This document shows, piece after piece, positions 5,657 through 64,000 of a stretch of 64,000 nt of DNA. The stretch is from Scyliorhinus canicula. Taxonomy: Eukaryota. The DNA is taken from NCBI RefSeq assembly GCF_902713615.1, contig NC_052151.1, positions 118,516,123-118,580,122 of the forward strand, given 5' to 3'. A program made the translations under genes and the position numbers. The notes below the pieces were generated by a model that saw nothing but the letters and a program-made list of their open reading frames with translations, was not told where the DNA came from and ran no database searches. How positions within the stretch are numbered: the first letter of the stretch is position 1; every line of letters starts with the position of its first letter.

Positions 5657-5700
5657 GATACCAAACAACTGAACCATCCTGTCCACCAGGGAGCAGCACC

Positions 5701-5744: not shown

Positions 5745-5820
5745 ATCAGCTAATTATACTAAAAGAAACAAACTCAGGGACACATTAAAAGGGGCCGCTC
5801 CTGATAGGGGAACTGCCCAA

Positions 5821-6430: not shown

Positions 6431-6434
6431 CTCG

Positions 6435-17000: not shown

Positions 17001-17745
17001 TGTGACCCAGCAGGGACTCGAACCTGGGACCCTGGCTCAGTTTGAGGTCAGGTGCCCTTGCTCTTAATTCCCCATGAGGGGATTATTTCTGCAGACCCAC
17101 CCTACCAAATCCTTCAATGCCTCAGATCAGCCTCAATCTTCAACACAGGAAGATTCAAACTCAGCTCTTCAGCCCCAGTCTTCACTCTGGCCAATCAGCA
17201 TCAAGCCTGCTCAGAACAAGATATCTCCTTTGATGTTTAAATGTTCAATTCCCAAACCCTGATGGGAGCTCAAAAGCAGAATAACGAGATTGGAGGGCCT
17301 TCAGCCCCAATTAAAAATCAGATTCCATCTGTATCACTTTCCTGCAAACATTTGGATAACCAAGACCTGAATGAAGTTGAGGCACCAGATCAGATCTCTG
17401 GGGATCAGCACATGTCAGTTCTTGACAGTCACACAATGTTCCCCTCGGGGGTTGGGGGAGGATTCCAGTGAATAGCCACACCAACCATACTCAACAAGGA
17501 GCTCCCCGACCTATACAGCCCCTCCCCCACACTAGAGTAGGGGGGAAACTGAAGCAGACAGAAAGTTAACAACCCCCATTAAAAACAACCCTCTCAATGA
17601 GAAGAACCATTCAAGGAGATGTGGTTCTTGGAGCTTTGAGTGCACAAACCGCAGCCATCATTTCCATTGTCTCAGACCAGTGAAATGAAGAGACCAATCA
17701 GCTTCCAGACACAAGGAATCACTGCTTTATTGAAAATGAATTTGA

Positions 17746-19445: not shown

Positions 19446-19485
<40 letters not shown>

Positions 19486-20734
19486 GAAGAGAGAGAAAGA
19501 GAGAGGAGGGTCCTCAAGTCAGGGGCCAATGATTTAGGATAATCATGACAATGAATTTCTTCATTTAACAGCTCATGAATCTCAAGAATTCTCTATCCCA
19601 GAGAACTGGGAATGCTCAGTCAGAGGATATTCAGGACAGTGGATTTATTTTTGGACATTAAGGGAATCATGTTGAGGACAGGGATGTGAGAAGTTCAGTC
19701 CTGATCTTAATGAATGGGGAACAGGCTGAAGGGGCTGCATGGCCTCATGTTATTATGTTGCTCAGCAACCCCCAGCCATGTATACAAAGAGATTAGCATG
19801 AAGACCAGGATCAATTAACAGGGAACTGATTCAATAAAGAGGACAGCTTCAGTTAACAGGAAAAGGAACCACAAGTTGACAATATGGAGCCTGGAAATAG
19901 AACAGTTTTAATCCAGGGTCCCATTGATTCCAATGACTAGGAAAGTGGGAAGTGTGGAGTTCCTGTTTGGTCCAATCCATCTGAATTCCCATTTCATCCT
20001 GTTCATTAACACCCAATCCAATTGGATTAAACTGGACTGAAATTTAACCCCATTTCAATTGATGTGAATGAGCAGGAAAGAGCTGAAATCAACAAGAGGA
20101 AAAGCTCAGAGGAACCAAAGAGAAGCTTCCAGACCAAGGGGGTTGATGTCACAAGGTTGAAGAGACTCAGACTAGTGGAAGCAAAGTACAACCCAGAACA
20201 GGAAGCTAGTTTTGGGGGGTTTAGGAATTAGGAGACCAGTATCTCCTCAATATCAATGCCATCTCACCAAGTGTTGGAGTAAGAGTGGAGAACAATCTCC
20301 AGCCTAAGCTTAGAGCCAGAGTTGAGGATTGACATTACCTGCAATTTGCTGCCACACTCATGGAGCCCATAGTCAAAGAGGACAGTGTGGTTCTGAGAGT
20401 AGATCCTGGTTGGCAGACAGCCTGCTGCCCCCAGGGTCAGGTCAGCAGCTTTAACCAGGTGCCTGGTTCCAAATAAATCCAGCTGGACCCTGACCAGCAG
20501 CTTGTCCTCTGCACACTGCACCACCACAGTCTGCAGTGGAGACACACTTTGACCCTCAGACACACGGAAATGGGAACCAAAGGGAGGAAGAGGGACTCTC
20601 TGAGGCACAGAGGTGGCTTTGACTCTGCTCCATGGAAACCTCTGGCCCAGAAACTGTTGCCAAGTATCAGAGGAACAAACAGCTCCAACTAACACCAGCA
20701 CTGGGAACAAAGCCCTCACTCCAAAATCCCCCAT
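17746..20734 (-). CDS. zp3: ZP3-like copy 2, intact, 9 exons, 459 aa
   Basis: Exons 20734-20339, 19289-19174, 19086-18983, 18899-18722, 18636-18510, 18433-18345, 18265-18147, 18074-17946, 17867-17746. Exon lengths match copy 1 except that the TGA stop is 3 codons earlier. Confidence 0.92.
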
Positions 20735-20778
20735 GATACCAAACAACTGAACCATCCTGTCCACCAGGGAGCAGCACC

Positions 20779-20822
20779 TTTTATACTCACAACCTGTACT
20801 CACCTGAACTCTTTTGAGGTCA
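20779..20822 (-). promoter_or_regulatory. ZP3 copy 2 core promoter
   Basis: TATAAAA 20785-20779, E-box 20806-20801; same layout as copy 1. Confidence 0.65.
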
Positions 20823-22079
20823 ATCAGCTAATTATACTAAAAGAAACAAACTCAGGGACAAATTAAAAGGGGCCGCTCCTGATAGGGGCACTGTCCAAAT
20901 AATAATAATAATCTTTCGTATTGTCACAAGTTGGCTTACGCTAACCTATTTAATGTAAGTTAATGAAGTCACTGTGAAAAGCCCTGAGACGCCAGAGCCC
21001 GGCACCTGTTTGGGTACACGGAGGGGGAATACAGAATGTCCAAATTACCTAACCACACATCTTTCAGGACATATGCGGGTAACCGGAGCACCCGGAGGAA
21101 ACCCTCGCTGACATGGTGAGAACGTGCTGCTTCTGCACAGACAGTGACCTGCCGGGAATCGAACCTGGGACCCTGGTGCTGTGAAGCCACAGTGCTAACC
21201 ACTGTGCAACCGTGCTCTCCCTAATAGTTCACAAGTAGGCTGACATTATCACTGCAATGAAGTTTCTGTGAAAATCCCCTAGTTGCCACATTCCAGCGCC
21301 TGTTTGGGTACACTGAGGGAAAATTCAGAATGTCCAAATCGCGTAACAAACACATTTTGCAGGATTTGTGGGTGGAAACCGGAGCACCCGGAGGAAACCC
21401 GTGCAGACACTGGGAGAACATGCAGACCCCACACAGACTGTGACGCAAGCCGGGAATCGAACCCAGGACCCTGGCACTGTGAAGCAGTAGGGCTAACCAC
21501 TGTGCTATCGTACTACCTAGGCCCAACCATTTTCAGCAGTTTCGTCAATCGCCTCCCTTCCATCATAAGGTCAGAAGTAGAGATGTGTGTTGGTGATTGC
21601 ACAATGTTCAACATCATCTGTGACTCCTCAGATACTGAAACAGTCCATGTCCAAATGCAACAAGACCTGGAAAATATCCAGGCTTGGAATGACAAATGGC
21701 AAGTAACATTCATGCCACACAAAGGCCAGACAGTGACCATCCCCTATAAGAGAGATTCTAACCATTGCCCCATGACATTCAATGGCACCACCATCTACAA
21801 GGCACAAGTTGAGAATGTGATGGAATACTTTCCACTTACCTGGATGTTTGCAGCTCCAACGACAGTCAAGAAACCTGACATCATCCAGGACAAAGCAGCC
21901 TGCATGATTGGCACCCCTTCCACAAATATTCACTCCTTCCACCACCGATGCACAGTAACAGTTGTGTGTACCATCGACAAGATGAACTGCAGGAACTCAC
22001 CATGGCATCTTAGATTGCAGCTTCCAAACCCAAGACCATAACCATCTAAAAGGACAAGGGCAGCAGTCACCTGGGAAAT

Positions 22080-24574
22080 TGATGTGTTGGGTAGGCTGGG
22101 TCTATGTGGACTGCGTTTGATGCAGTGGAGCAAGAGACAGACTTGATGAGATGCAACATGATTTTATTTAACATCTAACTATTTTACATGTTCAACTTTG
22201 GGTTGACACTATGCTGACTTGATTGGAGATCTGAGGCTAGCCTGACCAGACTAACTGATTACCACATGGTGTTTGTTCTAGCTGCTGCTCACGAGCTCTG
22301 ACTGTCTCAGAGGCTGGATCCCGAGAGAGCGGGAAAACTGGTGCCCTCTGGCTTTATAGTGGTCGTGTCCTGTCTGGTGAGTGGCTGCTGTGTTCTATGT
22401 GCTTACTGGTCATCCTGTGTGTCAATCACTGCCTATCTGCACTCCATGATATACATGGATGCATATTCTGACATCTCCCCTCTTTTTTTAAAAAGTGTGT
22501 GTTCAGATAATGAATAGTAAGGTTTATGTGCATGAAGATGTGTATATGTATGTGACTGTATACAGAAAATGCTAAAATGGACTTATATACATAGGAAGTT
22601 GTCGCTAGTGCAGATATAGGGCAGATGAAATGGTCAAAATGTGATATTTACAGATGTCAAAACGATGAGGTAACAAAGTTGTGCAAACATTCAGTCTATA
22701 AGTTTAGTCTCTGTGGCGGGCGACGAATTCTGGTTGATCGCCTCAAGGGTGGATCAGGGGCCGCCTGCACTTGGATGGGTGGGACTGCCACCAATGGGGT
22801 GGTCGCAGAGGTAGGTAGGATTGCTGGGAGATCGGTGGCCTCGTGGCAGGGCCTGTCCAGAGGAAGCAGTGTGTGAGGTGGGACATCACGGTCGGGTGGT
22901 GGACGTGGAAGTCTGCACAGCGCCCACCTGTTGCGTCGTAGGAAGGAGCCATCGGCCATACGAACGAGAAACGATCTCAGGGCCACTTGCTTGACCACCA
23001 CAGCTGTGGTGGACCAGCCCCCGTCAGGCAGCTGTACACGAACCCGATCAGTTGGGACCAGCTCGGGGAGATCCGTGGCATGAGCATCGTATGCTGATTT
23101 CTGTTGGGCCCGAGACTGCTGCATCTTCTGTATGACCGGGAAGTTGTCAAGGTCTGGAATGTGGATGGCTGGAACCGTTGTTCGCAGAGTGCGGTTCATG
23201 AGCATCTGCACTGGAGACAACCCAGTGGACAGCGGGGTCGCCCTGTGTGCCAACAGTGCCAGGTTGAAGTTGGAGCCTGTGTCTGCAGCCTTACATAGTA
23301 GTCTTTTGACGATGTGTACCCCTTTTTCGGCCTTCCCGTTTGACTGTGGGTAGTGGGGGCTGGATGTGACATGACGGAAGTTGTATAGCTGGGCAAAATC
23401 AGACCACTCCTGGCTGTAAAAACAGGGGCTGTTGTCATTCATCACCGTGAGTGGTATACCATGTCTGGCAAATGTTTCTTTGAATGCCTTAATCACCGCC
23501 GCCAACGTGAGGTCAGATACTCTCACCACTTCGGGGTAATTGGAAAAGTAGTCGACCAGGAGGACATAGTCATGCCCCTGGCGTGGAAAAGGTCGACACC
23601 GACTTTGGACCATGGGGAGGTCACTATCTCATGTTGCAGCAGAGTTTCTTAAGGTTGACCTGGCGGATGTTTTTGACATGTAGGGCAGTTGAGGACTGTG
23701 TTGGCAACGTCCTAGCTGTTGCCCGGCCAGTAGACTGCCTCCCGAGCTCTACATTGACATTTCTCGACCCCCAAGTGACCCTCGTGGATTTGGCCGAGCA
23801 CCATAGCTCGCATGCTCTGCGGGATCACGATTCTGTCAAGCTTCATGAAGATGCTGTCTACCACCGTCAGATCGGCCTTGACGTTGTAAAACTGGGGACA
23901 CTGACCCTTCTGCCAGCCATTCGTGAGGTGCTGCATCACCCGCTGGAGCAGAGGATCCCCGGCCGTTTCCTCACGAATTTGAATGGCTCTCTCATCAGAG
24001 GCCGGAAAGTTGGAGGCAGAGAATTGCACCTGTGCGTCGAATTGACAAACGATGTCAGTTTGCTCACACGGTGTGGTGATAGACCTGGAAAGGGCAACTG
24101 CAACGATGAGTTCTTTGCCTGGGGTGCAGACCAGTTCAAAATCATAGCGGCGTAGCTTGAGAAGGATGCGTTGTAACCGTGGCGTCATGTCATTGAGGTC
24201 TTTTCGGATGATGTGGACCAATGGCCCGTGGTCCGTCTCAACCATGAATTTGGGGAGGCCATACACATAATCGTGGAACTTGTCGATTCCTGTTAGGAGG
24301 CTCAAGCATTCCTTCTCAATCTGAGCGTACCGTTGCTCAGTGGGCATCATGGCTCTGGAGGCATACGCCATTGGGGCCCAGGAGGAGGAGTCATCCCATT
24401 GGAGGAGCACTGCACCAATGCCGTCCTGGCTCGCGTCAGTGGATATTTCTGTGTCCTTGGCGGGGTCGAAAAACGCCAGCACTGGGACTTTGGTGAGTTT
24501 TGCCCTCAGCTCACGCCATTCTTTCTCATGAGCGGGCAGCCACTGAAATTCTGTCGACTTTCTGACGAGATGGC
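22080..24574 (-). mobile_element. Element A, 5'-deleted copy (3' LTR 22080-22473)
   Basis: ORFs 23712-24608 and 22696-23613. Same deletion junction as unit 1, plus a 1-bp integrase deletion near 23578. Confidence 0.92.
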
Positions 24575-40544: not shown

Positions 40545-41988
40545 CAGCGCCGGCCCTAGGGATTGCTGGTGCCCCGGGCAAGCTGAACTTCGGCGCCCTT
40601 CGTGGGGGGGGTCGGGTCGGGTCGTGTCGGGTCGGGTCGGGGGGGTCGGGTCGGGTCGGGTCGGGTTGGGGGGGGTCGGGTCGGGGGGGGTNNNNNNNNN
40701 NNNNNNNNNNNNNNNNNNNNNNNNNNNNNNNNNNNNNNNNNNNNNNNNNNNNNNNNNNNNNNNNNNNNNNNNNNNNNNNNNNNNNNNNNNNNNNNNNNNN
40801 NNNNNNNNNNNNNNNNNNNNNNNNNNNNNNNNNNNNNNNNNNNNNNNNNNNNNNNNNNNNNNNNNNNNNNNNNNNNNNNNNNNNNNNNNNNNNNNNNNNN
40901 NNNNNNNNNNNNNNNNNNNNNNNNNNNNNNNNNNNNNNNNNNNNNNNNNNNNNNNNNNNNNNNNNNNNNNNNNNNNNNNNNNNNNNNNNNNNNNNNNNNN
41001 NNNNNNNNNNNNNNNNNNNNNNNNNNNNNNNNNNNNNNNNNNNNNNNNNNNNNNNNNNNNNNNNNNNNNNNNNNNNNNNNNNNNNNNNNNNNNNNNNNNN
41101 NNNNNNNNNNNNNNNNNNNNNNNNNNNNNNNNNNNNNNNNNNNNNNNNNNNNNNNNNNNNNNNNNNNNNNNNNNNNNNNNNNNNNNNNNNNNNNNNNNNN
41201 NNNNNNNNNNNNNNNNNNNNNNNNNNNNNNNNNNNNNNNNNNNNNNCGGGGGGGTCGGGTCGGGGGGGTTGGGTCGCGTCGGGTCGGGGGGGTCGGGTCG
41301 GGTCGGGGGGGTTCGGGTCGGGGGGGTTGGGTCGGGTCGGGGGGGTGGGTCGGATTGGGTCGGGTTGGGTCGGGGGGGTCGGGTCGGGGGGGTCGGGTCG
41401 GGGGGGTCGGGTCGGGTCGGGGGGGGTCGGGTCGGGTCGGGTCGGGGGGGGTCAGGTCGGGTCGGGGGGGGTCGGGTCGGGTCGGGGGGGGTCGGGTCGG
41501 GGGCGGTCGGGTCGGGTCGGGGGGTCGGGTCGGGGGGGTCGGGGGGGTCGGGTCGGGTCGGGGGGGTGGGGTCAGGTCGGGTCGGGTCGGGTGGGGGGGG
41601 TCGGGTCGGGGGGGTCGGGGGGGTTGTGGGGGGTCGGGGGGGTCGGGCCGGGTCGGGGGGGTCGGGTCGGGTCGGGTGGGTCGGGTCGGGTCGGGTTGGG
41701 GGGGGTCGGGTCGGGTCGGGGGGTCGGGGGCGTCGGGTCGGGGGGGGGGTCGGGTCGGGTCGGGGGGGTCGGGTCGGGTCGGGTCGGGTGGGGTCAGGTC
41801 GGGTCGGGGGGGTCGGGTCGGGTCGGGGGGGGGCCGGAGTGTCCTGGTATATGATTGGGACTCACCGATCGGCGGGCCGGTCTCTCTGTCGGCAGGTCTC
41901 TGACGCCGGTCACGCACTCGTTGATGGCGCCCCCTAGCACATGGCGCCCCGGGCGACTGCCCGAGTTGCCGGTACCTTGAGCCGGCCG
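40545..41988. mobile_element. Non-autonomous hAT-type DNA transposon inserted in element A pol
   Basis: 8-bp TSD GGGGTGGC at 40537-40544 and 41989-41996. Imperfect TIRs CAGCGCCGGCCCTAGG / CCTTGAGCCGGCCG. Removing it restores the pol reading KPNATP-MVHAPRR. Confidence 0.8.
40603..41833 (+). repeat. (GGGTC/GnTC) G-rich minisatellite containing an assembly gap
   Basis: Directly visible tandem repeat; N-run at 40692-41246. Confidence 0.95.
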
Positions 41989-42485
41989 GGGGTGGCGTTT
42001 GGTTTCAGCAGGATTTTGTATCGGTATGGGAGCGTGCCCATTCCATCGAACACGCTGTGGTACTGCGTGATGATGTCATCAATTTCAGCCTGGAAGTTTT
42101 CATCAGGTGAGGCCGTCGCCTGTGAGGATGACATGGTGTGGACTCACTGAACCAGGTTCAGGAGTTTGCACCCGAGCACCGAGCACCGAGCAGGGATGCT
42201 CTGTCAGGTCCGACAATCTCAAATTGCAGCGTCGCTTTAAGTGACCTATTGGAAATGCCGAGTTGGCACGAGCCACTGGCAGCAATGGCATTGCCATTGT
42301 AGTCAAGGAGCTGGCAGGCCGGTGGAAGAATGCTGGTCTGACGCGGATAGTGTCGAGATAGGATTTTGAAATGAGGTTCGCTGATGCGCCGGTACCCAGC
42401 TTGAAACGGATGCGGGCCTTGTTGACTGAGGACAGCACGCCACTTGTCATTAGGATCCACGCTTAGGATTGGGAGGTGTTTCACC

Positions 42486-42818
42486 ATAGAACATAGAACA
42501 GTACAGCACAGAACAGGCCCTTCGGCCCTCAATGTTGTGCCGAACAATGATCACCCTACTTTAAACCCATGTAACCCGTATACCCGTAACCCAACAATCC
42601 CCCCATTAACCTTACACTACGGGCAATTTAGCATGGCCAATCCACCTAACCTGCACATCTTTGGACTGTGGGAGGAAACCGGAGCACCCGGAGGAAACCC
42701 ACGCACACACAGGGAGGACGTGCAGACTCCACACAGACAGTGACCCAGCCGGGAATCGAACCTGGGACCCTGGAGCTGTGAAGCATTGATGCTAACCACC
42801 ATGCTACTGTGAGGCCCC
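42486..42818 (-). mobile_element. Well-preserved HE1-like SINE inserted in element A
   Basis: Complete head, core and (catagaa) tail. Removing it restores the host reading KHALPFSKM-VKHLPIL, with a short ccat duplication. Confidence 0.85.
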
Positions 42819-43432
42819 ATCTTTGAGAAAGGCAGCGCATGCTTGGTAATGATGCCTGTGGTGGTATGAATGTGAGCACTGCCATTGGTGCAGAACATGG
42901 GTTTCCCATTGGCTCTGGCTGGTCATGTGCCTCTCGTCCGATTGGCTGGGACTAGTCATGTGACTGCTCATCAATTGGTCGATAGGCAAGTAGACCCCGC
43001 CTCCGAGGCGGGGTATAAGTACCCAGAGTTCCCGGCGGTCGGCCTTTCTCTGTAGTCGACCAGCGGGCTAACAACTAGCTGATTAAAGCCACAGTTTGGA
43101 TCTTAATCGTGTCTCGAGTCCAATTGATGGTACATCAATTTAATCAGCTAGAATTTTGGAATGGAGCTTCGCATCAAGCCTCACTGCCTCCGCACCAGCC
43201 CACATGCTTCAAATGCATCTGCAATCTTTAAACATTGGCAGGCGTGTTTTAATAGCTATCTGACGACTGCAGCCGGCAAGCCCACCATGGAGCAGAAACT
43301 CCACATCCTCCTCTCATGCGTGGGCACAGCGATCTACTCAATGATTGAGGACGACAGCGATTATGATGCGGCCATGGAGATTCCCAAAGGACACTTTCTC
43401 CGGACGGTCAACAAAGTAAACGCACGAAAGTA

Positions 43433-44916
43433 AACATTCTCATTTGAGTTCAGTTTTTCATTCCTTAACCTGGTGCCTTTCAGATGTCTGGAGATTTCCT
43501 GATCTACACCACCCACCTGACCCACAGCCCAGAGTATCATGGATCTGTCATTGTGAGAACAAATGGAGCTGTTGTTCCCATTGAGTGTCGTTACTTTAGG
43601 TGAGAATCTTTATTTGAAGATCCACAGCTGTTAGTGTTCTCTGAAGTTGTCTTAAAATGACTCTGCTGCCTTTCCAGGAAGGGCAATGTGAGCAGTAACC
43701 CCATCAGGCCTACCTGGATCCCATTCAGCTCCACCAGGTCTAGAGAAGGACATCTTTCATTCTCTCTGCGCCTAATGAATGGTATGTGATGGGGAGTGAT
43801 TTCCTGTCTTCACTCACTGGGAGTGACACCCACTGTCTCCAACCCTTATCCTCTTGTTCTTCAGGTGACTGGCTTACAGAGCGCACTTCCACTGTCTACT
43901 ACCTGGGTGACCTCATTCACATTGAGGCCTCTGTTTCAATGAGCAACCACATGCCCCTGAAGCTCTTCATTGACCGCTGTGTAGCTACATTGAACCCAGA
44001 CAAGGACTCCACCCCGAGATACAGCATCATTGACTACAATGGGTAAGGAGCTCTCTGCTTTCTCCAGCTGCTCCCATCTCACTGGCTTCACTTGATTCAC
44101 TTCATGTCCCTTTTTAATCTATCTTCAGTTGCCTCCTGGACAGCCAAGCTGAGGACTCCTTTTCAACCTTTGTGTTGCCAAGTGGCGAGCGGGAGATGGA
44201 CAAGCTCCGGTTTGACCTGGATGCATTCCGTTTCTTTGGAGATGACCGTTCCTTGGTAAGAGGAAATTGATCACTGGGGTCTCTGGGTTGGGAGGGAGTC
44301 ATTAAATAACAACGTGTTGATGTTTCCCTCAGATTTTCATCACCTGTCACCTGAAAGTAGCTCCAGTGGATCGGAGGGATTCCAAGAACAAAGCTTGTAC
44401 TTTCCAGAAGATGCAGAATATGTAAGCTCTCTCTCGGATGGGCTTTTGTGGAGAAGTGATGCACAACCCAGTTGGTTGACTGATTTTTGTCTTGCTTAGC
44501 TGGGCCCAATTGGAGGAATCGAGCATTGATATTTGTGCCTGTTGCCATGTGGGTAACTGTGCCACAAGGGAGCTGCGATTTGGATCCAGAGGAAGGAGAG
44601 ATCTTGTAGCTGAAGCTGGTAGGACATTGATTCTCTAGATGGTGGACGTTTCCCCTTTCCCCTCTCTAACTGTAATGTTTAATATTGCAGAAAATGAAGT
44701 TGGATCGAAGTGGGAGGCTGAGGCCTCACTTGGACCCCTGATCATTCTGGATACTGATGTGACCAACCTGGCAACGGACTCTCTGAATGAGGGAAGGATG
44801 CAGGAGAGGTCCCCAGGTGGTGAGTTGGCTGACTGTGGTTTCTATTTGCCCCTCAGTGTTTCCTTCACTAACCATTGGCTTCTCATTGGTTTGTAGGTGT
44901 GGAGTCTGAGGTGGTC
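43433..44916 (+). pseudogene. zp3: Unspliced ZP3 gene fragment (end of intron 1 to first 20 nt of exon 9) inside the gag of element B
   Basis: Exons 43484-43599, 43678-43781, 43865-44042, 44129-44255, 44333-44421, 44500-44618, 44691-44819, 44897-44916. Lengths match the intact copies and introns are retained. Exon 1 and most of the TM segment are missing. It is flanked on both sides by gag coding sequence. Confidence 0.93.
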
Positions 44917-45106
44917 GCTTACGTTGCTGGCATGCAGTCCCCTTCTATCCGCCAACGATTGCTGGAGAAGAACACCCTCAGCCTAGCTGAGGCACGGACT
45001 CGTGCAACCTCCCTGGAGGTTGCTGACCTGAACGCCCGCGCATACGCCCCCGGCCGCGCAGCAACCCCCTGGACTTCATGGCACGCGCCACCCCCGTCCT
45101 CCGTGG

Positions 45107-45143
<37 letters not shown>

Positions 45144-45522
45144 ACCCCCAAAGCCTGCGCTGCAGGTCACTCTGACAAACTAGCGGGGCCCCGTTGCTAT
45201 TTTTGTGGTCTCTCCAAGCACCCTCGCCCCGCGCTGTCCGGCCCGCTCCGCTCTGTGTAAGAGCTGCGGGAAGAAGGGCCACTACGTAGTGGTCTGCCAG
45301 ACCAAGTCGGTCGCTGCTGTTCCACGCAGCGACCGCGGATCGCCCCCCCCCCCGGGCCCCCCTAGGGCCCAGCGCCGCACACCAACCTCTTCGGCCCGCC
45401 TCCCTGGCCCCCGAACGGCCCCGCGGCCCTCCCGACCCTCGCTCCCAGCTGCCCCGACCGGCCCGCAGACGCCGCTGACACTGCCCCCAGCCGCCATGAG
45501 GTTCCCACGGGCGCCACCTACT

Positions 45523-45655
45523 TGGGCCCCGGACACCATGTGCGGGCCATGGGCGCCGCCATCTTGGGGCCCCGGATCCATGTGCGGGCCCTGGGCGCGG
45601 CCATCTTGGGACCCCGACTCCACGTGCGAGTCCTGGGCGCCGCCATCTTGGGCCA
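45523..45655 (+). repeat. ~42-bp tandem repeat in the gag-protease linker of element B
   Basis: Three copies encoding WAPDTMCGPWAPPS / WGPGSMCGPWARPS / WDPDSTCESWAPPS. Confidence 0.8.
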
Positions 45656-48600
45656 ACACGGAAGGCTCTGCCAGCGATTACTCTGCCACCGAGGAGGATC
45701 TGGAACTCTCACCACGACTTTCTTCCATCACACTCGACCAGTCGCGACCACGCACGCTCGCCAAGACTACGACAACGATCCAGCTCAACGGACACAAAAC
45801 GAGATGCCTGCTGGACACCGGGAGCACGGTAAGTTTCGTCCACCCCAACACGGTAAGACACTGCGCGCTCCCCACCCATCCAGTTAAGCATAAGATTGAA
45901 TTGGCCTCGGGTTCGCACTCCGTCCAAATCACCAGGTGCTGCATAGCGGACCTCACGGTCCAGGTGAGGGTTTTCAAAAACTTCAAACTCCTCATTCTCC
46001 CCCGTCTATGCGCTCCGGCACTCTTGGGCCTGGATTTCCAGTGCAACGTGCAGAGCTTGACCTTTCAATTCGGCGGCCCTATTCCCCCTCTTACTGCTGC
46101 CTCAAACGCTGCCTCGGCTTCTTCTCATATTATGCCCAGTGGGTCCCCAACTACGCCGACAAAGCCCGCCCCCTCATCCAGACCACCTCCTTTCCCCTAT
46201 CGATGGAGGCCCGCCAGGCCTTTAGCTGCATCAAAGCAGATATCGCAACGGCCACGATGCATGCTATCGACGAGCCCCTCCCATTCCAGGTCGAGAGCGA
46301 CGCATCTGACGTAGCTCTGGCGGCCACCCTGAACCAAGCGGGCAGACCCGTGGTCTTCTTCTCACGAACCCTCCACGCTTCCGAAATCCACCATTCCTCG
46401 GTGGAAAAGGAGGCACCGGCCATAGTCGAAGCTGTGCGATACTGGAGGCACTATCTGGCCGGCAGGAGGTTTACCCTCTCACAGACCAACGGTCAGTAGC
46501 TTTCATGTTCGATAATGCACAGAGGGGCAAGATCAAGAACGACAAGATCTTGCGGTGGCGGATCGAATTGTCCACGTACAACTACGATATCTTGTATCGT
46601 CCTGGGAAGCTCAATGAGCCTTCCGATGCCCTATCCCGCGGTACCTGCGCCAGCGCACAGATTGACCGCCTCCGCTCCCTCCACATGGACCTCTGCCATC
46701 CAGGGGTCACCCGTCTTTACCATTTTATTAAGACCCGCAACCTGCCCTACTCCGTTGAGGAAGTCAGGACCGTCACTGGGGACTGCCACGTCTGCGCCGA
46801 GTGCAAACCGCACTTCTACCGCCCCGAACGAGCGCATCTGATCAAGGCGTCCCGCCCCTTCGAACGTCTCAGTATAGACTTCAAGGTTCCCCTCCCCTCC
46901 AACAACCGTAACACATATTTCTTGAGTGTTATCGACGAATACTCCCGCTTCCCTTTTGCCATTCCCTGTCCCGACATGACCACAACAACCGTCACAAAGG
47001 CCCTCCTATCCATCTTCTCCCTGGTCGGTTACCCCGCGTACATCCACAGCGACCGGGGGTCCTCCTTTATGAGTGACGAACTGCGTCAGTTCCTGCTCAG
47101 CAGGGGCATAGCCTCTAGCAGGACGACCAGTTATAACCCCCGGGGTAACGGTAAGGTCAAGCGGGAGAATGGCACCATTTGGAAGACCATCCTGCTGGCC
47201 CTACGGTCCAGAGATCTCCCTATTCCCCGTTGGCAAGAAGTCATCCCCGACGCCCTGCATTCAATCCGGTCTCTCCTCTGTACTACCACTAATCAAACAC
47301 CTCATGAACGTCTTCTTGTTTTCCCCAGGAAGTCGTCCTCAGGATCCCCTCTCCCGACCTGGCTGGCCACCCCCGGGCCCATCTTGCTCCGGAAGCATGT
47401 GCGGGTGCACAAGTCCGACCAGTTGGTCGAGCGAGTCCAGTTACTCCACGCCAACCCGCAGTATGCGTACATGGAGTATCCCGACGGTCGGCAGGATATG
47501 GTCTCACTTCGGGACCTGGCACCCACCGGCGTGCGGCCTTCTCCCCCTACATCAACATCTCCCCACCCAACCCCAATTCCCCCCCAGTGCCCCCTGCGCC
47601 CCCACGACCCAGCGCACATGCCCCCTCGTCTCCACCACCAGCCCGGGGTACGGAGACACATCTACGATCGACGCTCCCAGAGGCAAGGACGGCCATCGGC
47701 CCGACATCACCGGCTCCACTGCGACGGTCCTCCAGAACACCACGGGCACCCGACAGGCTGATCGTCTCCATCTGATGCGACTATGGGACATTTTGGACTT
47801 TGTTGTTATTCTGTTGCACCTTAAGTTGTAGTAGTAGTATTATTTTTTGCCATGAGCCAGTGGGCAGCCCACCTTTCTCGATTTTCGCTGCTCATACCAC
47901 CAGTCCTCGGATCCCCCCCCCCCGCCTCTCTTCCACTTACACCCCCCCCCCCCCCCCCCGGCCTTCTTTCTCCACAAGGGGTGAATGTGGTGGTATTAAT
48001 GTGAGCACTGCCATTGGTGCAGAGCATGGGTTTCCCATTGGCTCTGGCTGGTCATGTGCCTCTCGTCCGATTGGCTGCGACTAGTCATGTGACTGCTCAC
48101 CAATTGGTCGAGAGGCAAGTAGACCCCGCCTCCGAGGCGGGGTACAAGTACCCAGAGTTCCCGGCGGTCGGCCTTTCTCTGTAGTCGACCACCGGGCTAA
48201 CAACTAACTGATTAAAGCCACAGCCAGGCCGGCAGTACCAGGTTCAGGATCCGATGGGCTGTCGGGGTCGGAGTCTGGCACAGCCTGCTGAATCGAACGG
48301 ACGCTCCTGCGCCTTGGCTGGGATCGCTGTGTGCTGGGCAGTGCAGCAGATCTGCAAAGGGTTGCGTAGTGGCCAAGCTTGCCACACTGTAGACACCGTC
48401 GTGATTTTGCCGGATATTGCCGCTTTAAATGGGCGGAGCCAGAATTTGGACACGCCATGACGCCAACGTCAGCGCGTTCTGTACGCCATCGCTCATGCGC
48501 AGTGTGGTTGAATGACGTACGCACCTGCGCAGGCTGGTCGTCGGTCTTGCCGTCCCCTCGGTCGTGGCGCGCATACGCTGGAGCCCAGGAAAAGCTCGGG

Positions 48601-51509
48601 AAATGGCCACTCTCATCAAGACTCAGGCCCTGCATTTGTGCGATTGCCTGCACCCATTCTGCCTCGTGGGGGGGTTAGCTTAGCCATTTCTGCCGCCCTG
48701 ATGTGGGAGAACCGGTTGTTAGCATGCATGTGGAGAACACACGTTTCGATGGCGATGTTGAGGGTGAGCTGCTTGACTTTCAGGAGCTGCTGGTGAAGGG
48801 AATCAGAGTGGACTCCGAAAATGATCTGATCCCGGATCATGGAATCAGTTGTCGAGTCATAGTTAAATGACTGCGCGAGGATGCGGAGATGGGTCAAAAA
48901 GGATTGAAAAGGTTCATCCTTATCCTGAAGCCTCTGCTGGAAAACGTACCGTTCAAAGCTCTCATTCACCTCAATGTCGCAGTGGCTGTCGAATTTCAGC
49001 AGGACTGTTTTAAATTTCGTCTTGTCTCCGCCTTCAGCGAATGTAAGGGAGTTGTAGATGTGGATGGCGTGGTCCCCCGCTGTGGAGAGGAATAGTGCGA
49101 TCTTCCTGGCGTCCGATGCGGCTTCGAGGTCGGTGGCTTCAAGATAGAGTTCGAACTTCTGTTTGAAGATCTTCCAATTTGTACCGAGGTTGCCGGCGAT
49201 GCGGAGCTGCGGAGGAGGGCAGACGTTGTCCATGTTACCGGATGGCTGTTTGCTGGTCAATGCCGATTCACTCAAGGTAGGTCCGTCAATTTTCAGCACC
49301 GAACCTGATACCATGATGTGTTGGGTAGGCTGGATTTATGTGGACTCCGTTTGATGCAGTGTAGAGAGAGACAGGCTTCCAACACTTGATGAGATGCAAC
49401 ACGATTTAATTTAACATCTAACTATTTTACATGTTCAACTGTGGGTTGACACTATGCTGACTTGACTGGAGACCTGAGGCTAGCCTGACCAGACTAACTG
49501 ACGACCACATGGTGTTTGCACTAGCTGCTGCTCACGAGCTCTGACTGTCTCAGAGGCTGGATCCTTAGAGCAAGGGAAAAATGGTGCCCTCTGGCTTTAT
49601 AGTGGTTGTGTCCTGTCTGGTGATTTGCTGCTGTGTACTGTGTGTTCACTGGTCATCCTGTGTGTCAATCACTGACTGTCTGCACACCATCATATACCTG
49701 GATGTATATTATGACAAACATCACCACCTGGACGTTCAAACATTTTGAGATCAGAATTGTTGCTCATTGTTTGGACAGCAGGAACTGGTAATAATAGCGC
49801 TGTTGCAATTTACAGCCCATCTTTTGTTTCTTATCCAATTCCGGTCCCCCTTCAACTTGCACCATTGACCCTGCCTTCTAACCTATCACAGACTTTTGTT
49901 CTGTTCTCCCTTCCTCTCCCCACCACCTTAAAACTTGTTATATTCCTAAAGTCTTCCAATTCCCAACGAAAGGTTACCAACCTGAAACATTGACTACGGG
50001 AACAATTCTCCCAAAACATCTCTAAGTGTGTCTCTGGTGGGAACCGAGGTCAATTCCTGCCGGGTGGTTTGGCGCAATGCAGATCGCAATCTATCTACAC
50101 TTAGAATTTTGTTGGGAGGTTGGGGTGAGCTGCAGCCTGATTGAGGGGCGCAGAGCTGAAGACTCCGGCAGGTCCGGCTCCTCCGAGATCGGGGCACCAT
50201 TCATAAAGGAAGATCTGATCTCAGGCAAACGCTCAGCCCCCCACCCCGCCCCATTGCCAGTACCAGCACCCCCCCACGTGAGCGACAGCTCGCTATGGGG
50301 ATGGCCAATGCACCACCTGCATATTCATCACTCTGATCTCCATCACTCTGGCTTCACACTGCGCCGGCGGGTGGGAGAATTCCAGGAGCCAGGAGAATCC
50401 AGCTTAAAACAGATCCTGCATATTTAAATAAGGGTGTTGTGCACAAACCTGGGGCGGGATTCTCCCCTACCCGACGGAGCGGGCTGTCCCGGCGTCAATG
50501 AGTGGCGTGAACTACTCGGGCGTAGGGCCGCCCAGAAGGTGCGGAACCCTCCGCCGACCGGCGCGAGTTAGCGCATGCGCGTGAGTGCCAGCGTTTGCTG
50601 GCATCTTCTCAGTGCATGCGCAGGGTGGTTCTTTTCCGCTCCAGCCATGGCGGAGGTTGACAGCGGCTCATGCGGAGGGAAAGAATGCCCCCACGGCACA
50701 GGCCCGCCAGCGGATCTGTGGGCCCCCATCGCGGACCAGGCCACCGAGGGGGCACCCCCGGGGCCAGGTCCCTCCGCGACCCCCGGAGGACTACGGAGGC
50801 CGCCAGCAGAGCCAGTTCCCGCCGGTAAGTACCAGGTCTAATTTACTCTGGCGGGACCGGCCTACAACAGACAGCTGCACGGCCCATCGCAGGCCGGAGA
50901 ATCGATGGGGGGGGGGGGGGGGGGGGGGGGGGGGCGCAGCGAGCGGCCATCGACCGGCGTAGCACGTTGCCCGCCCCCACCAAAACCCCGGCGCCGGACA
51001 ATTCAGCAGCCGGCGGCGGCGGGATGCACGCTGACCCCTGGCTATTCTCCAGCCCCGTGGGGTTGGAGAATCCCACCCCTGATCACAGCAGCTGGAGCGG
51101 TCAAGGAGCATCGGAAATTGTTTGACACCCGGCGCAAATCCCTTTTCGGGCCTCTCCCGGGATTTTCCCAAGTTCGCAGAATTTGCGCTGGGCGCAATGT
51201 GGCTAGAGAATCGCCCCGCTGTTTCTCTACCGGTGCTGACTAAATATTTCCAGAAATTTCTGTTCATGTTGTACATTTAAGAACTGAACTTGTTCATCAT
51301 TACTGATTTAACTAAATACAAATAACAGACTGATGCTTGAGCAAGATTTCTTTACATGTGCCAGGCATAGGTTGCTGTAAGCACATTGAATCTTGTGGAA
51401 GTTATAATTTGCCTTTTGCAATATTTTTACTACATGGTCATGCAGAAACTTAAACAGCATTTTGTCTCCAGCACAAGTATGTTTAATGCCGTATGTTCAT
51501 GTTTTACAG

Positions 51510-57719: not shown

Positions 57720-60658
57720 TTACTGGGCGAACAGAGTTTGATTCCGTTTCCTGTACAGGAACAAGGTGATCAATGAAGCAGAGATCAGAGAGACAGCTGT
57801 CACAGTCAGGGTCACGATCAGGACCACCTCAGACTCCACACCTACAAACCAATGAGAAACCAATGGTTAGTGAAGGAAACACCAAGGGGGAAATGGAAAC
57901 CAGCAGTCAGCCAACTTACCACCTGGAATCCTCTCCTGCATCGTTCCCTCATTCAGGGAGTTTGTTGCCAGGTTGGTCACATCAGTATCCAGAATGATCA
58001 GGGGTCCAAGTGAGGCCTCAGCCTCCCACTTCAATCCAACTTCACTCTCTGCAATATCAAACATTCCAGTTAGAGAGGGGAAAGGGGAAACCTCCACCAT
58101 CTAGAGAATCAATGTCCTACCAGCTTCAGCTACAATATCTCTCCTTCCTCTGGATCCAAATCTCAGCTCCCTTGTGGCACAGTTACCCACATGGCAACAG
58201 GCACAAATATCAATGCTCGATTCCTCCAATGGGGCCCAGCTAAGCAAGACAAAAATCAGTCAACCAACTGTATTGTGCATCACTTCTCCACAAAAGCCCA
58301 TTTGAGAGAGAGCTTACATATTCTGCATCTTCCTGGAAAGTACAAGCTTTGTTCTTGGAATCTCTCCGATCCACTGGAGCTACTTTCAGGTGGCAGGTGA
58401 TGAAAATCTGAGGGAACCATCAACACGTCGTTATTTAATGACTCCCTCCCAACACAGACCCACAATGATCAGTTTCCTCTTACCAAGGAACGGTCATCTC
58501 CAAAGAAACGGAATGCATCCAGGTCAAACCGGAGCTTGTCCATCTCCCGCTCGCCACTTGGCAACACAAAGGTTGAAAAGGAGTCCTCAGCTTGGCTGTC
58601 CAGGAGGCAACTGAAGACAGATTAAAAAGGGACATGAAGTGAATCAAGTGAAGCCAGTGAGATTGGAGCAGCTGGAGAAAGCAGAGAGCTCCTTACCCAT
58701 TGTAGTCAATAATGCTGTATCTCGGGGTGGAGTCCTTGTCTGGGCTCAATGTAGCTACACAGCGGTCAATGTAGAGCTTCAGGGGCATGTGGTTGCTCAT
58801 TGAAACAGAGGCCTCAATGTGAATGAGGTCACCCAGGTAGTAGACAGTGGAAGTGCGCTCTGTAAGCCAGTCACCTGAAGAACAAGAGGACAAGGGTTGG
58901 AGACAGTGGGTGTCACTCCGTGAGTGAAGAGAGGAAATCACTCCCCATCACATACCATTCATTAGGCGCAGAGAGAATGAAAGATGTCCTTCTCCAGACC
59001 TGGTGGAGCTGAATGGGATCCAGGTAGGCCTGATGGGGTTACTGCTCACATTGCCCTTCCTGGAAAGACAGCAGAGTCATTTTAGGACAACTTCAGAGAA
59101 CACCAACAGCTGTGGATCTTCAAATAAAGATTCTCACCTAAAGTAACGACACTCAATGGGAACAACAGCTCCATTTGTTCTCACAATGACAGATCCATGA
59201 TACTCTGGACTGTGGGTCAGGTGGGTGGTGTAGATCAGGAAATCTCCAGACATCTGAAAGACACCACGTTAAGGAATGAAGAACTGAACTCAAATGAGAA
59301 TGTTCTACACAGGGGTTAACAATGAACTCGCCCCATCCAATTAAAATAATTCAAGGAGATTGGCAGGTTCGGTGCAAATAGGCTACTGGGCCCCAGCTGG
59401 AGTGTCGGGGGGGGGGGGGGAAAGAGTCATCTCAGGTCAGGGGTCAATCATTTAGGATAAACATGATAATGACTTTCTTCATTTAGCAGCTCATGAATTC
59501 TCTATCTCAGAGCTGGGAATGTTCAGTCAGAGGATATTCAGGACAGATGGATTATATTTTTGGACATTAAGGGAATCATGTTGAGGACAAGGGCATGAGG
59601 TTATGGGGAGCCCAGCCCAGATCTTAATGATCAGGGACAGGCTGGAGGGGCTGCATGGCCTCATCTTGTTATTAGTGTTGCTCAGCAACCCCCAGCCATG
59701 TATACAAAGAGATCATTAGACACAAGATCAGGATCAATTAACAGGGAATTCATTCAATAAAGGGACAGCTTCAGTTAACAGGAAAAGGAGCCACAAGTTG
59801 ACAATGATATGGAGCCTGGAAATAGAACAGTTTCAATCCAGGGCCCCATTGATTCCAATGACTGGGAAAGTGGGAAGTGTGGAATTCCTCTTTTTTCCAA
59901 TCCATATGAATTCCCATTTCATTCTGTTCATAAACACCCAACCCAATTGGATTAAACTGGACTGAAACCAAACCCTCAGTTGGATTGATGTGAATGAGGG
60001 GGAAATAGAGCTGAAAAATCAACAAGAGGAAAAGCTCAAGAGGAACAAAAGAGAAGCTTCCAGATCAATGGGGTTGATGTCACAATATTGAAGAGACTCA
60101 GACCAGTGGAAGCAAAGTACAATCAGGGAGCTAGTTTGGGTGTTTAAGACACAGGAGACCAGTATCTCCTCTATATCAATGACATCTCACCAAGTGTTGG
60201 AATAAAGAGTGTGGAACAATCTCCAGCCTAAGCTTAGAGCCAGAGTTGAGGTTTGACATTACCTGCAATTTGCTGCCACACTCATGGAGCCCATAGTCAA
60301 AGAGGACAGTGTGGTTCTGAGAGTAGATCCTGGTTGGCCGACAGCCTGCTGCCCCCAGTGTCAGGTCAGCAGCTTTAATCAGGTGCCTGGTTCCAAATAA
60401 ATCCAGCTGGACCCTGACCAGCAGCTTGTCCTCTGCACACTGCACCATCACAGTCCGCAGCGGAGACACACTTTGACCCTCAGACACACGGAAATGGGAA
60501 CCAAAGGGAGGAAGAGGGACTCTCTGAGGCACAGAGGTGGCTTTGACTCTGCTCCATGGAAACCTTTGGCCTCGAAACTGTTGCCAAGTATCAGAGGAAC
60601 AAACAGCCCCAACTAACACCAGCACTGGGAACAAAGCCCTCACTCCAAAATCCCCCAT
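57720..60658 (-). pseudogene. zp3: ZP3-like copy 4, +1 frameshift in exon 6
   Basis: Exons 60658-60263, 59253-59138, 59059-58956, 58874-58697, 58610-58484, 58407-58318 (90 nt versus 89; extra base ~58332), 58239-58121, 58048-57920, 57841-57720. The shifted frame stops at TGA 58212-58210 in exon 7. Confidence 0.8.
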
Positions 60659-61775: not shown

Positions 61776-64000
61776 TGATGTGACCATCAATTCACGATAC
61801 ACGTGGTTGGAAGTGAACAGTGGTTTTAATAGTCTTACAACTGAGCCTGCCTGCGACGAGATGAACTGGCAGCAGGCTCACAACTGCAGATCTTTATACT
61901 TCCAGTTAGTGGGAGGAGCCATGGGCAGAACCATGGGCGGAGCCACGGGTGGAACCCAGTACAAACTCCTCATCTCCCCCTATGGGCAGATCCGCGCAAC
62001 TGCTCGTATACCGAGCTTACAAAGACACAACACATACAATATAACACAGTGTGAATTGCTCGGATTGTGATTCACCACATTCACCCTCTGTAAAAAATCA
62101 AGTCCAGCGGGGGTGATGGTCTACAAATTGAGTCGGTCCGGCAGTCGAGTCGTCCCCTGAGATCTACGAAGTACCGGGGTTGCAGCCTCTTCTGGTGGCT
62201 GGGTGGTGGCGGTTGGCGAGGGTACCATGGCGGACTCCAGGGGTGATTCGGTCCGAGCTTCGTACCCGAGTGGTTCGACTGGCGACGGGGAGCACCGGAA
62301 ACCCATAGGCGCGGGGGCGCGGAGCACGGACAGTGAACCTGCAGGCGTGGGGGGGACGGGCGCAGGGGTTTGGGTGGGGTGTAGTGTGAGGGGCACCTCG
62401 GCGGTAGTAGTGTCAGAGTTGGATCCTGCAGGTGCCAGGTCCCGGAGGGAAACAGTGTCCTGACGGCCGTCAGGGTATTCGATGAACGCGTATTGGGGGT
62501 TCGAGTGGAGTAGGAGAACTATCTCAACGAGTGGGTCAGTTTTGTGGGTCCGGACGTGCTTCCGAAGAAGAACCGGGCCCAATGTCTTCAACCATGCTGG
62601 GAGCGAAACCCTCGTGGTAGTGCCCCTGGAAAAAACAAATAGCCGCTCGTGAGGGGTCTGATTGGTGGCTGTGCATAGGAGGGACCTAATAGCATGGAGC
62701 GCGTCGGGGAGGACCTCCTGCCAATGGGAGCTCGAGAGATTCCTGGACCGGAGGGTCATTGGACGGTCTTCCAGACCGTCGCGTTCTCCCTCTCCACCTG
62801 CCCGTTCCCCCTGGGGTTGTAGCTGGTAGTCCTGCTCGAGGCGATGCCCTTGTCGAGCAGGTACTGACGCAGCTCGTCGCTCATGAAGGACGAACCCTTG
62901 TCGCTGTGTACATAGTTGGGGAAACTAAACAGGGTGAAGATGCTGTGCAGGGCTCTAATGACTGTGTGGGAGGTCATATCGGGGCACGGGATAGCAAAGG
63001 GGAAGCGGGAGAACTCGTCTATGACGTTTAGGAAGTCCACATTCTGATTGGTCGAGGGGAGTGGCCCTTTGAAATCGATGCTCAGGCGTTCAAAGGGCCG
63101 GGAGGCCTTGACCAGGTGGGCCCTGTCTGGTCTATAGAAGTGCGGTTTGCACTCCGCACAGATCGGGCAATCCCTGGTGATGGCTTTTACCTCCTCGGTG
63201 GAGAAAGGCAGATTTCGGGCTTTGACGTAGTGTGCGAGCCGGGTAACCCCCGGGTGGCAGAGGTCACTGTGGATAGCTTTCAGGCGGTCGTCTTGCGCGC
63301 TGGCGCACGTGCCGCGGGACAGGGCATCTGTGGGCTTGTTGAGCTTCCCCGGTCGATACATAATATCGTACTTGTAGGTGGAGAGTTCGATCCTCCACCG
63401 TAGGATCTTATCGTTTTTAATTTTGCCCCTTTGTGAGTTGTCAAACATAAAGGCAACTAATCTTTGGTCGGTGATGAGGGTGAACCTCCTACCTGCGAGG
63501 TAGTGTCTCCAGTGACGTAAAGCTTCCACGATGGCTTGTGCTTCCTTTTCGACCGAGGTGTGTCGGAGTTCTGAAGCAGAGAGGGTTCGGGAGAAAAAGG
63601 CGACTGGTCTCCCTGCCTGATTTAGTGTGGCTGCAAGAGCTACCTCTGAGGCATCGCTCTCTACCTGGAAAGGGACGGATTCATCCACCGCCCGCATGGC
63701 CACTTTGGCGATGTCCTCCTTGATGCAGGTGAAGGCCTGGCGAGCCTCATCTGATAGAGGAAAGAGTGTGGCCTTAAATAGGGACTCACTGGACATAATA
63801 CGAGAAAAACCCCAGGCACCTTTTGAGGGTCCTGGGACAATGAGGGAGAGGGAGAGGGAGTTGGCATACGTTCCGGGTCGGGGCCCAGAACTCCGTTTTC
63901 TACGACATAGCCGAGGATGGCTAGCCTGGTCGTGCGGAAAACGCATTTCTCCGTGTTATACATGAGGTTGAGTTTCTGGGCACCCTGGAGAAATCGATGG
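61776..64000 (-). mobile_element. Element C: Ty3/Gypsy related to B, 3' part only (RT end, RNase H, integrase, 3' LTR 61776-62079)
   Basis: ORFs 62756-63946 and 62121-62759 closely resemble the RNase H and integrase of B, with a frameshift at ~62759. The LTR termini TGTGGTG...GATGGTCACATCA and the GGGTGAA purine tract match those of B. It runs off the window end. Confidence 0.9.

Follow-up and report, generated by a model that had tools for sequence, protein, structure and literature searches.

The ZP3 sequence inside the gag gene of an LTR retrotransposon in this window (the whole 64,000-nucleotide stretch of DNA analysed here) is best read as a break in gag that arose after integration and was patched with DNA of a neighbouring ZP3 paralogue, a reading to which we assign a probability of roughly 0.6. 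Most likely, the ZP3-in-gag chimera is an ordinary repair scar in a dead element, involving no new capture mechanism. The carrier, here called element B, sits in the spacer that separates units 3 and 4 of a tandem array of ZP3 (egg-coat) genes, within an older element, and is built as follows:

42857-43094, plus strand: 5' LTR of element B, with TGTGG...CCACA termini.
43161-43426, plus strand: N-terminal part of gag, some 89 codons that are intact until the break, corresponding to homologue residues 1-89.
43427-43432, plus strand: putative junction filler AAAGTA, 6 nt (at 43413 and again at 43427, a unique direct repeat of 9 nt).
43433-44916, plus strand: genomic ZP3 fragment, 1,484 nt, recognised by homology to four array copies and by the splice pattern in RNA contigs.
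43484-43599, 43678-43781, 43865-44042, 44129-44255, 44333-44421, 44500-44618, 44691-44819 and 44897-44916, plus strand: exons of the ZP3 fragment.
44917-45183, plus strand: C-terminal part of gag, beginning AYVAGMQSPSIRQRLLE, with a stop at 45181-45183 after a poly-C run.
45256-45297, plus strand: zinc knuckle CX2CX4HX4C of the nucleocapsid, in ORF 45205-46314 (weak zf-CCHC_2 match, E 0.005).
45775-46038, plus strand: aspartic protease (PF13975, E 3.8e-12), residues 191-278 of ORF 45205-46314.
46080-46100, plus strand: site of the internal deletion of the RT core; matching to P0094 begins at 46101.
46206-46478, plus strand: RNase H-like domain (PF17919, E 4.7e-21).
46670-47140, plus strand: integrase, zinc-binding part and catalytic core (rve, E 2.9e-19).
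47986-48223, plus strand: 3' LTR of element B, with a putative polypurine tract directly before it.

Element B belongs to a very abundant, lineage-specific family of Ty3/gypsy-type LTR retrotransposons. Its LTRs are direct repeats of 238 nt that are 96.6% identical (8 differences) and end in TG...CA, as in Ty3/gypsy-type (Metaviridae-like) elements, and the PPT-like tract abutting the 3' copy reads AAGGGGTGAA (47976-47985). The domain order, from gag through zinc knuckle, PF13975 protease and PF17919 RNase H to rve integrase, also fits the Ty3/gypsy type, with the RT core deleted in this copy: no RVT domain was found in element B, and residues 1-165 of P0094 (the PF00078 part) are unmatched. 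The best relatives of the integrase are 68-76% identical, and those with names come from stingrays and rays. This copy is dead, with the RT core gone and several frameshifts. The zinc knuckle lies in a reading frame other than that of gag 44917-45183, and the RNase H-like domain is followed by a frameshift (frame 2 to frame 1) and a stop at 46478-46499. No canonical 4-6-bp target-site duplication was found at the flanks of the element; the element is preceded by ...GATGCC and followed by GCCAGG, and with only 3 bp (GCC) shared, more rearrangement of the locus is possible. The spacer around element B is heavily rearranged; the old element A there contains, all within 2 kb, a satellite, a SINE and an assembly gap. 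The gap, a run of N at 40692-41246, lies 2 kb from element B.

The gag reading frame runs from an ATG at 43161 to a stop at 43431-43433. Residues 1-89 of its homologues align to 43161-43427 (best P0001, 52% identity, E 4.5e-21) and residues 135-397 of P0001 to 44917-45852, frame changes included. Measured against these protein homologues, one internal segment of about 45 codons (about 135 nt) is missing between 43426 and 44917, and the insertion point thus shows the loss of recipient sequence that goes with a delins patch. Family copies, seen at loose contig ends, have ...AGAGA and then T or C right before the position equivalent to 44917. Family read depth seems to drop before 43420, and gag similarity may end a few bases earlier than assumed.

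What fills the gap is 51 nt of a partial intron, seven whole exons, seven complete introns and, from the last exon, 20 nt, all from a ZP3 gene. The complete introns measure 72-86 nt and all run GT...AG, and five of them are spliced out in RNA contigs of run X9, which identifies them as real introns. Joined together, the eight exon pieces give an open 882-nt frame, with which the C-terminal part of gag from 44917 is continuous. For exon 43867-44040 the match to chicken ZP3 (3nk3) has E = 7.6e-19, that to ZP2 only 0.011, and Pfam ZP-C is matched at E 1.6e-12. The sense strand of the fragment is plus, the strand of element B and opposite to that of the array genes. The fragment lies wholly within the ZP3 transcription unit, for which the chance is roughly 13-20% if a 1.5-kb piece is drawn at random from a 15-kb unit. 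Its 19 private substitutions (4 synonymous, 5 non-synonymous and 10 intronic) fit neutral decay, and no sign of expression or selection of the open in-frame ZP3-gag frame was detected. The preliminary description had read the locus in much this way, and LTR comparison together with alignment of gag homologues reproduces its element (42857-48223), its gag ATG and its points of break (near 43426) and resumption; the 1,484 nt of seven-intron genomic ZP3 that it reported also hold, as does their orientation, sense to the element and inverted relative to the four array genes, and the short gag deletion that it proposed is now sized by the protein homologues.

Between 43430 or 43433 and 44916 the fragment matches four inverted, minus-strand copies in the array, at 94-96% identity including gaps (E = 0) or 96.6-96.8% in substitutions, over distances of 9-41 kb:

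57822-59308, minus strand: U4 homologous segment, inverted and 12.9 kb downstream, of the likeliest donor lineage.
32928-34437, minus strand: U3 homologous segment.
17848-19344, minus strand: U2 homologous segment.
2786-4292, minus strand: U1 homologous segment.

As parts of the locus, the homologous segments are delimited at 57822-59304 (U4), 32928-34433 (U3), 17848-19340 (U2) and 2786-4288 (U1). The fragment and U4 form a clade in the tree (support 85/90) and share 7 sites, of which 3 are derived as judged by the letters of organism B, pointing to the U4 lineage as the likeliest donor lineage. All four units retain the segment, which speaks for copying and not cut-and-paste, and no array copy in the window is identical to the fragment; the true donor may sit outside the window. 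The terminal branch of the fragment (0.016) is equal to half the LTR divergence (0.017), so the capture appears about as old as the integration, and a patch after integration is inseparable from one during it. No allele carrying element B with an unbroken gag was observed here.

Both homology borders of the fragment are sharp, with no foreign transposon sequence between gag and ZP3. At the left junction, AAAGTA and the first 3 nt of ZP3 (AAC) together repeat AAAGTAAAC at 43413-43421, a 9-nt repeat with a chance of about 1e-3 if 43427-43432 is filler, and four of four paralogues have GTAGAAC at this position. AAAGTA is probably templated filler, a reading that rests on gag protein homologues at 40-52% identity and presupposes an intact family gag without CGAAAGTAAAC after the Ala-Arg codons. 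Gag codon 90 at this junction is AAG where the homologues have His or Arg, which agrees with gag ending at 43426 or 43427. On the right, ZP3 and gag meet in a blunt join with microhomology of 0-1 nt; this is unlike the classic MMBIR signature and counts against a DNA patch. Neither poly(A) nor a target-site duplication was found at the fragment. Capture by a Helitron or a Pack-type DNA transposon is out, given that ZP3 homology adjoins gag with no more than 6 nt in between.

Read depth in two DNA samples was about 80,000-100,000 for the LTR, 3,000-22,000 for gag, 20-180 for the ZP3 part and 20-45 for low-copy DNA. The LTR and gag values are those of a multicopy LTR retrotransposon family, which by depth comprises hundreds of copies, and gag stands 100-1000 times above the ZP3 part. 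With the ZP3 part at low copy number and the gag family abundant, this depth-level test indicates that the chimera was not amplified, and nothing supports the mobilisation that the preliminary description had considered. The left junction was followed through words of the 111-nt stretch 43396-43506 that cross it or carry fragment-private variants. All 10 sampled words occur in run X2 (share 1.00; sample S1, possibly the source of the assembly) and 6/10 (share 0.60) in run X25 (sample S2, 2019, from a different study).

The anatomy, the size of the gag loss, the donor lineage, the low copy number and the occurrence of the left junction in two samples are established by the data; how events were ordered, that the template was DNA and which repair pathway acted we infer as follows. 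Element B would have inserted into the older element in the spacer, and at or after integration a double-strand break or replication-fork collapse in gag would have cost it the missing 135 nt or so. The gap would have been filled by an inverted copy, 1,484 nt long, of U4-lineage ZP3 DNA from 12.9 kb away. Microhomology-primed synthesis, with AAC as a 3-nt primer and AAAGTA as 6-nt templated filler, may have made the left junction, in the pattern of polymerase-theta or synthesis-dependent MMEJ, and a blunt or 1-nt-microhomology join the right one. The product would be a delins scar that is fixed or common, non-mobile and neutrally decaying. A local patch is favoured by the position of the chimera inside the donor array, 9-13 kb from its closest paralogues, given that the odds of a retrotransposed copy landing by chance in the roughly 64-kb array are about 4e-5 (contig sets of at least 1.8 Gb). 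Passage through element RNA is expected to remove introns, as established with retroviral vectors, and the retention of seven sense-orientation introns that are spliced efficiently from paralogue mRNA argues against such a passage. The preliminary description had offered two origins, an insertion templated at the DNA level, made after integration in place of a short part of gag, and capture of an unspliced pre-mRNA. The first is favoured by the replacement of some 45 codons, a neighbouring paralogue as donor lineage, intact introns, a site inside the donor array and end-joining-like junctions; the second is kept only as a minority rival.

In that rival the scar is likewise made in place, but the patch comes from unspliced or nascent ZP3 pre-mRNA of the neighbouring gene, a highly transcribed one, which undergoes nuclear reverse transcription and is then joined into the break (a 'class 2 templated sequence insertion'). 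We consider this unlikely, yet deserving of weight. With its start in an intron and its end in the last exon, the fragment lies entirely in transcribed sequence, which leaves some room for an RNA-derived patch, to the detriment of the DNA reading. Class 2 insertions (TSIPs) have a microdeletion, microhomology or filler, lack target-site duplications and poly(A), and copy intact donors enriched for transcribed, including intronic, sequence (PMC5110952). RT-encoding elements are present in hundreds of genomic copies, and in X9 a paralogue transcript that keeps intron 4 reaches about 5% of mRNA depth. However, one RNA with seven consecutive 72-86-nt introns unspliced over 1.4 kb would be rare where splicing is as efficient as in X9, and 1.5 kb is long for class 2. 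The filler suggests priming by a DNA polymerase on the gag flank, although a cDNA patch is still compatible with it. By sequence alone, cDNA and DNA are indistinguishable.

A complex local rearrangement, in which inversion or recombination joined halves of two family-B insertions across an inverted ZP3 remnant, appears improbable. It would account for flanks that share only GCC and would suit the disturbed spacer, with element A and its satellite, gap and SINE; against it, gag breaks off and resumes in one orientation with only about 45 codons between the two points, and the 96.6% likeness of the LTRs fits one element better than two independently truncated ones. Retrovirus-like transduction, with RT leaving the element RNA for an unspliced ZP3 transcript packaged in the same particle and returning before the chimeric cDNA integrates, is more improbable still. 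The sense orientation, the in-frame right junction, the similar ages of capture and integration and an RT-core deletion in the same copy, of the kind made by RT template jumps, would all agree with it, and gene fragments are common in maize LTR elements (PMC2774510). It needs, however, a cytoplasmic, packaged and completely unspliced ZP3 RNA and a chance insertion no more than 13 kb from the donor paralogue (about 4e-5), and it meets a low-copy chimera without a canonical 4-6-bp target-site duplication. RNA-mediated host-gene transduction is disfavoured by the retained introns, the low depth of the ZP3 part and a site inside the donor array, 12.9 kb from the sister copy. An assembly artefact (a chimeric contig or a repeat collapsed near the N gap 2 kb away) is scarcely credible. 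In its favour, no Logan contig of X1, X3 or X9 spans either junction, contigs on the ZP3 part carry paralogue letters and not fragment-private ones, and the word share of 0.44-0.47 in the best DNA runs is explicable by paralogues alone (up to 0.61), but the left-junction words found in two samples from different studies speak against misassembly, which the preliminary description had raised, as do 19 private substitutions that no array copy in the window matches and two precise junctions that return to gag 45 codons apart, unlike a misjoin.

For annotation, the locus is a caution that the presence of a host gene fragment in an LTR element does not in itself count as evidence of gene capture by a retroelement; here the location beside the donor, the retained introns, the low copy number and the end-joining-like junctions point to ordinary break repair. 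It also offers a clean, datable case, from a vertebrate germ line, of an inverted templated insertion on the kilobase scale, of about the age of its element (1.6% against 1.7% per lineage). As a 1.5-kb inverted repeat inside a tandem ZP3 array, it could favour inversions or gene conversion between fragment and array genes. More remotely, the inverted copy, which lies 12.9 kb downstream of U4 on the same transcribed strand, could pair with read-through ZP3 transcripts as a hairpin RNA and so bring the array under small-RNA control. Were the RNA patch true, a wholly unspliced pre-mRNA of an adjacent, oocyte-expressed ZP3 gene would have sealed a germ-line break 13 kb away, a natural vertebrate case of transcript-templated break repair with seven introns preserved.

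Among known systems, oncogene transduction by acutely transforming retroviruses shares with the ZP3 chimera a host coding sequence that replaces part of gag, an in-frame fusion and a replication-defective carrier. Transduced oncogenes went through an RNA stage and are spliced, whereas the chimera keeps all seven introns and shows no sign of transmission or expression. The captured sequence of maize Bs1 likewise lacks introns. Plant LTR retrotransposons of this sort also hold a host gene fragment between the LTRs of a recognisable non-autonomous element, and maize B73 has 425 such elements from at least 189 captures (PMC2774510). The maize captures were amplified within their element, whereas the ZP3 chimera is single or low-copy, has intact introns and lies beside its donor. 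Closest in form are the templated insertions of break repair (class 2 TSIPs, MMBIR/FoSTeS and synthesis-dependent MMEJ), which share a recipient deletion, a copied segment with intact donor, the lack of a target-site duplication and poly(A), a short filler, here putative, templated on the flank at one junction with little or no microhomology at the other, and heritability, hence a germ-line origin (PMC5110952; PMC2943611; PMC8421209). For the ZP3 patch, as for class 2 TSIPs, either DNA or RNA may have been the template. The ZP3 patch differs from these insertions in being long, at 1.5 kb, and in coming inverted from a paralogue 13 kb away to land in sense orientation and in frame within gag.

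Four ~15-kb units, arranged head to tail and each with one minus-strand ZP3 gene, make up the window, and the spacing between the third and fourth units (U3 and U4) is ~10 kb greater than the other unit spacings. The U3–U4 spacer contains element A, an older LTR retrotransposon in which three inserts are nested: a satellite with a gap, a SINE and element B, a plus-strand Ty3/gypsy-type LTR retrotransposon (42857–48223) whose gag is interrupted by a piece of ZP3 (the fragment).

2786–4288, minus strand: U1 segment homologous to the fragment (sequence match)
17848–19340, minus strand: U2 segment homologous to the fragment (sequence match)
32928–34433, minus strand: U3 segment homologous to the fragment (sequence match)
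57822–59304, minus strand: U4 segment homologous to the fragment (sequence match)
37144–49716, minus strand: element A, full length and old; LTRs at 37144–37537 and 49314–49716, ~89% alike
40560–41833: G-rich (GGGTCGG-like) satellite, broken by a 555-nt N gap (assembly gap)
~42480–42830: tRNA-type SINE

The satellite interrupts the RT region of element A, and 26 nt separate the SINE from the 5′ LTR of element B. Truncated copies of element A occur in units 1 and 2 (LTR copies 6992–7394 and 22080–22473), so element A is older than the array duplications. Between units, intergenic DNA is 85–97% identical and the ZP3 segments, introns included, are 96–98% identical; this greater likeness of the genes suggests concerted evolution or gene conversion inside the array. 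In U4, the exon homologous to 44333–44421 has one extra G at ~58333 (CCAGGAAG versus CCAGAAG in the other four copies), which causes a ZP3 frameshift with nine stops downstream; either U4 may be a pseudogene or the extra G a base-calling error. A second RNase H–integrase segment (62431–63764, minus strand), with 73% DNA identity to element B, represents a related but distinct family.

The preliminary description of element B as an LTR retrotransposon holds: its 238-nt LTRs have 8 differences, the ends read TGTGG/CCACA and a purine tract precedes the 3′ LTR. At the element ends no canonical target-site duplication was found, only a 3-bp GCC repeat (42847–42856 and 48224–48233), and the window yielded no second copy of the family. 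The RT core is missing, the nucleocapsid region shows frame changes, and a frameshift and a stop lie between RNase H and integrase; this copy is defective. Poly-C runs occur at 45107–45145 (~38 C, where gag is proline-rich) and 47916–47960 (two runs ahead of the PPT), and three tandem repeats of ~42 nt lie between nucleocapsid and protease (45509–45652).

Gag does open at the ATG at 43161 and break as had been described, its ORF ending in a stop at 43431–43433. Genomic ZP3 then occupies 43433–44916 on the plus strand, with sharp homology borders on both sides: the left border is intronic, and on the right the homology extends 20 nt into the last exon. The assignment to ZP3 is supported by the largest exon, which matches chicken ZP3 (3nk3, E 7.6e-19) far above ZP2, and by Pfam ZP-C. 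All seven introns noted earlier as retained are complete (72–86 nt, GT...AG), and five of them are skipped exactly in spliced ZP3 contigs of the RNA run X9 that run on into array-type upstream and downstream exons; the introns thus work in the paralogues. Concatenated, the eight exon pieces give an open 882-nt frame, and the in-frame ZP3–gag ORF (294 ZP3 codons plus 88 gag codons) is real, such in-frame joining being a one-in-three chance. No chimera transcript was detected among the X9 RNA contigs, which carry array-type ends, and left-junction words had a share of 0.00 across the 14 RNA runs listed from the index. One X9 contig (record 27, 44167–44360), from a ZP3 paralogue, shows 9 differences from the fragment and keeps intron 4 at a depth ~5% of that of the spliced mRNA contigs.

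Misassembly was checked at the left junction. None of the short-read contigs spans either junction, and those over the ZP3 part bear paralogue letters, so the lack of bridging contigs is uninformative; this part has mostly one contig per run per bin, and its depth is therefore not a ZP3 copy count. The word share of 0.44–0.47 in the best DNA runs was rejected as support for the chimera, since words shared with paralogues give up to 0.61 on their own, and the query 43396–43506 was used instead, in which each 31-mer spans the left junction or holds a fragment-private variant. Its words were found in 10/10 sampled for run X2 (sample S1, perhaps the assembly source) and 6/10 for X25 (sample S2, 2019, another study). 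The left junction is thus present in reads of two samples.

In a representative search, the 90-aa N-terminal gag piece retrieved gag proteins at identities of ≤52%. Alignments and tblastn place residues 1–89 of P0001 on 43161–43427 and residues 135–397 on 44917–45852, which indicates that ~45 gag codons (~135 nt) were replaced. Other family copies, seen as loose ends of family contigs, read ...AGAGA[T/C] directly ahead of 44917, in agreement with the conserved gag motif LIRD–A(Y/F)V. A word-index search with the 90-aa piece found no intact same-family gag, so the exact nucleotides at which gag breaks are inferred. Organism A carries the family in very high numbers, with depths of 3,000–22,000 over gag and up to ~100,000 over the LTR, low-copy DNA having 20–45. 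In the relative organism B, at ≥92% identity, it is essentially absent over gag parts 43210–43419 and 44960–45090, with depth only at 43070–43209, and the integrase search gave relatives at ≤76% identity, including rays.

At the left junction, gag ...AAAGTAAACGCACGA is followed by AAGTA and then by the ZP3 intron AACATTCTC, where the paralogues all read GTAGAACATTCTC. AAAGTAAAC is a 9-mer present twice, at 43413 and at 43427; the second copy covers the unexplained bases and extends over the first three of ZP3. The simplest reading of the junction, drawn from the sequence of this copy, would be that a ZP3 end annealed to the gag flank through AAC, copied AAAGTA, came free and was then joined to the gag end. 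Junctions formed by polymerase theta or by synthesis-dependent MMEJ are described with such a pattern (PMC2943611, PMC7165422). The right junction has 0–1 nt of microhomology.

The substitution distance between the fragment and the four array copies is 3.2–3.8% (3.4% for U4), and that among the copies 1.8–4.0%. A maximum-likelihood tree groups the fragment with U4, the next gene downstream (85/90), and U2 with U3 (100/99). Seven sites are shared by the fragment and U4, three of which are shared derived states, given that organism B has the other letter there. The 19 fragment-private substitutions comprise 9 exonic (4 synonymous, 5 non-synonymous) and 10 intronic changes, a pattern like that of the array copies (14 synonymous and 19 non-synonymous private changes, summed), so the captured exons give no sign of constraint; 9 substitutions would by chance be expected to leave the frame open. 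The fragment's terminal branch (0.016) is close to half of the LTR divergence (0.017), which suggests that the insertion is about as old as the integration of element B, with a wide error.

Intron retention, location in the array, low copy number, the missing target-site duplication, the gag deletion and the end-joining junctions together fit a break in gag that was repaired by copying in sequence of the neighbouring ZP3 paralogue. We give this DNA-derived patch a probability of about 0.58; of the two options proposed from the sequence, the evidence favours the DNA-level templated insertion after integration that replaced a short internal part of gag. The inversion and the short distance would fit replication-associated template switching or local DNA fragment capture. 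A patch made from RNA is less likely: the fragment does lie wholly inside the ZP3 transcription unit, and an RNA origin has been argued for human templated insertions of class 2 (PMC5110952), but a 1.4-kb RNA from which none of the seven introns had been spliced is expected to be rare. Capture of ZP3 through element B's own RNA cycle is unlikely, given that the seven sense-oriented introns are still present, the chimera sits inside the donor array (a chance of ~4e-5 for a genome of ≥1.8 Gb), the ZP3 part has a low copy number and a canonical target-site duplication is absent. Two truncated elements around an older ZP3 remnant were rejected, given gag breaks only ~45 codons apart in the same orientation and LTRs 96.6% alike, as was Helitron or Pack-type capture, because ZP3 homology abuts gag directly (≤6 nt between).

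Break sites patched by templated insertion are a familiar finding in vertebrates. In plants, gene fragments within LTR elements are well known (PMC2774510). If gag was indeed patched from the neighbouring paralogue's DNA, the chimera would be a new instance of a templated break patch, one that mimics a plant-type gene fragment in an LTR element.
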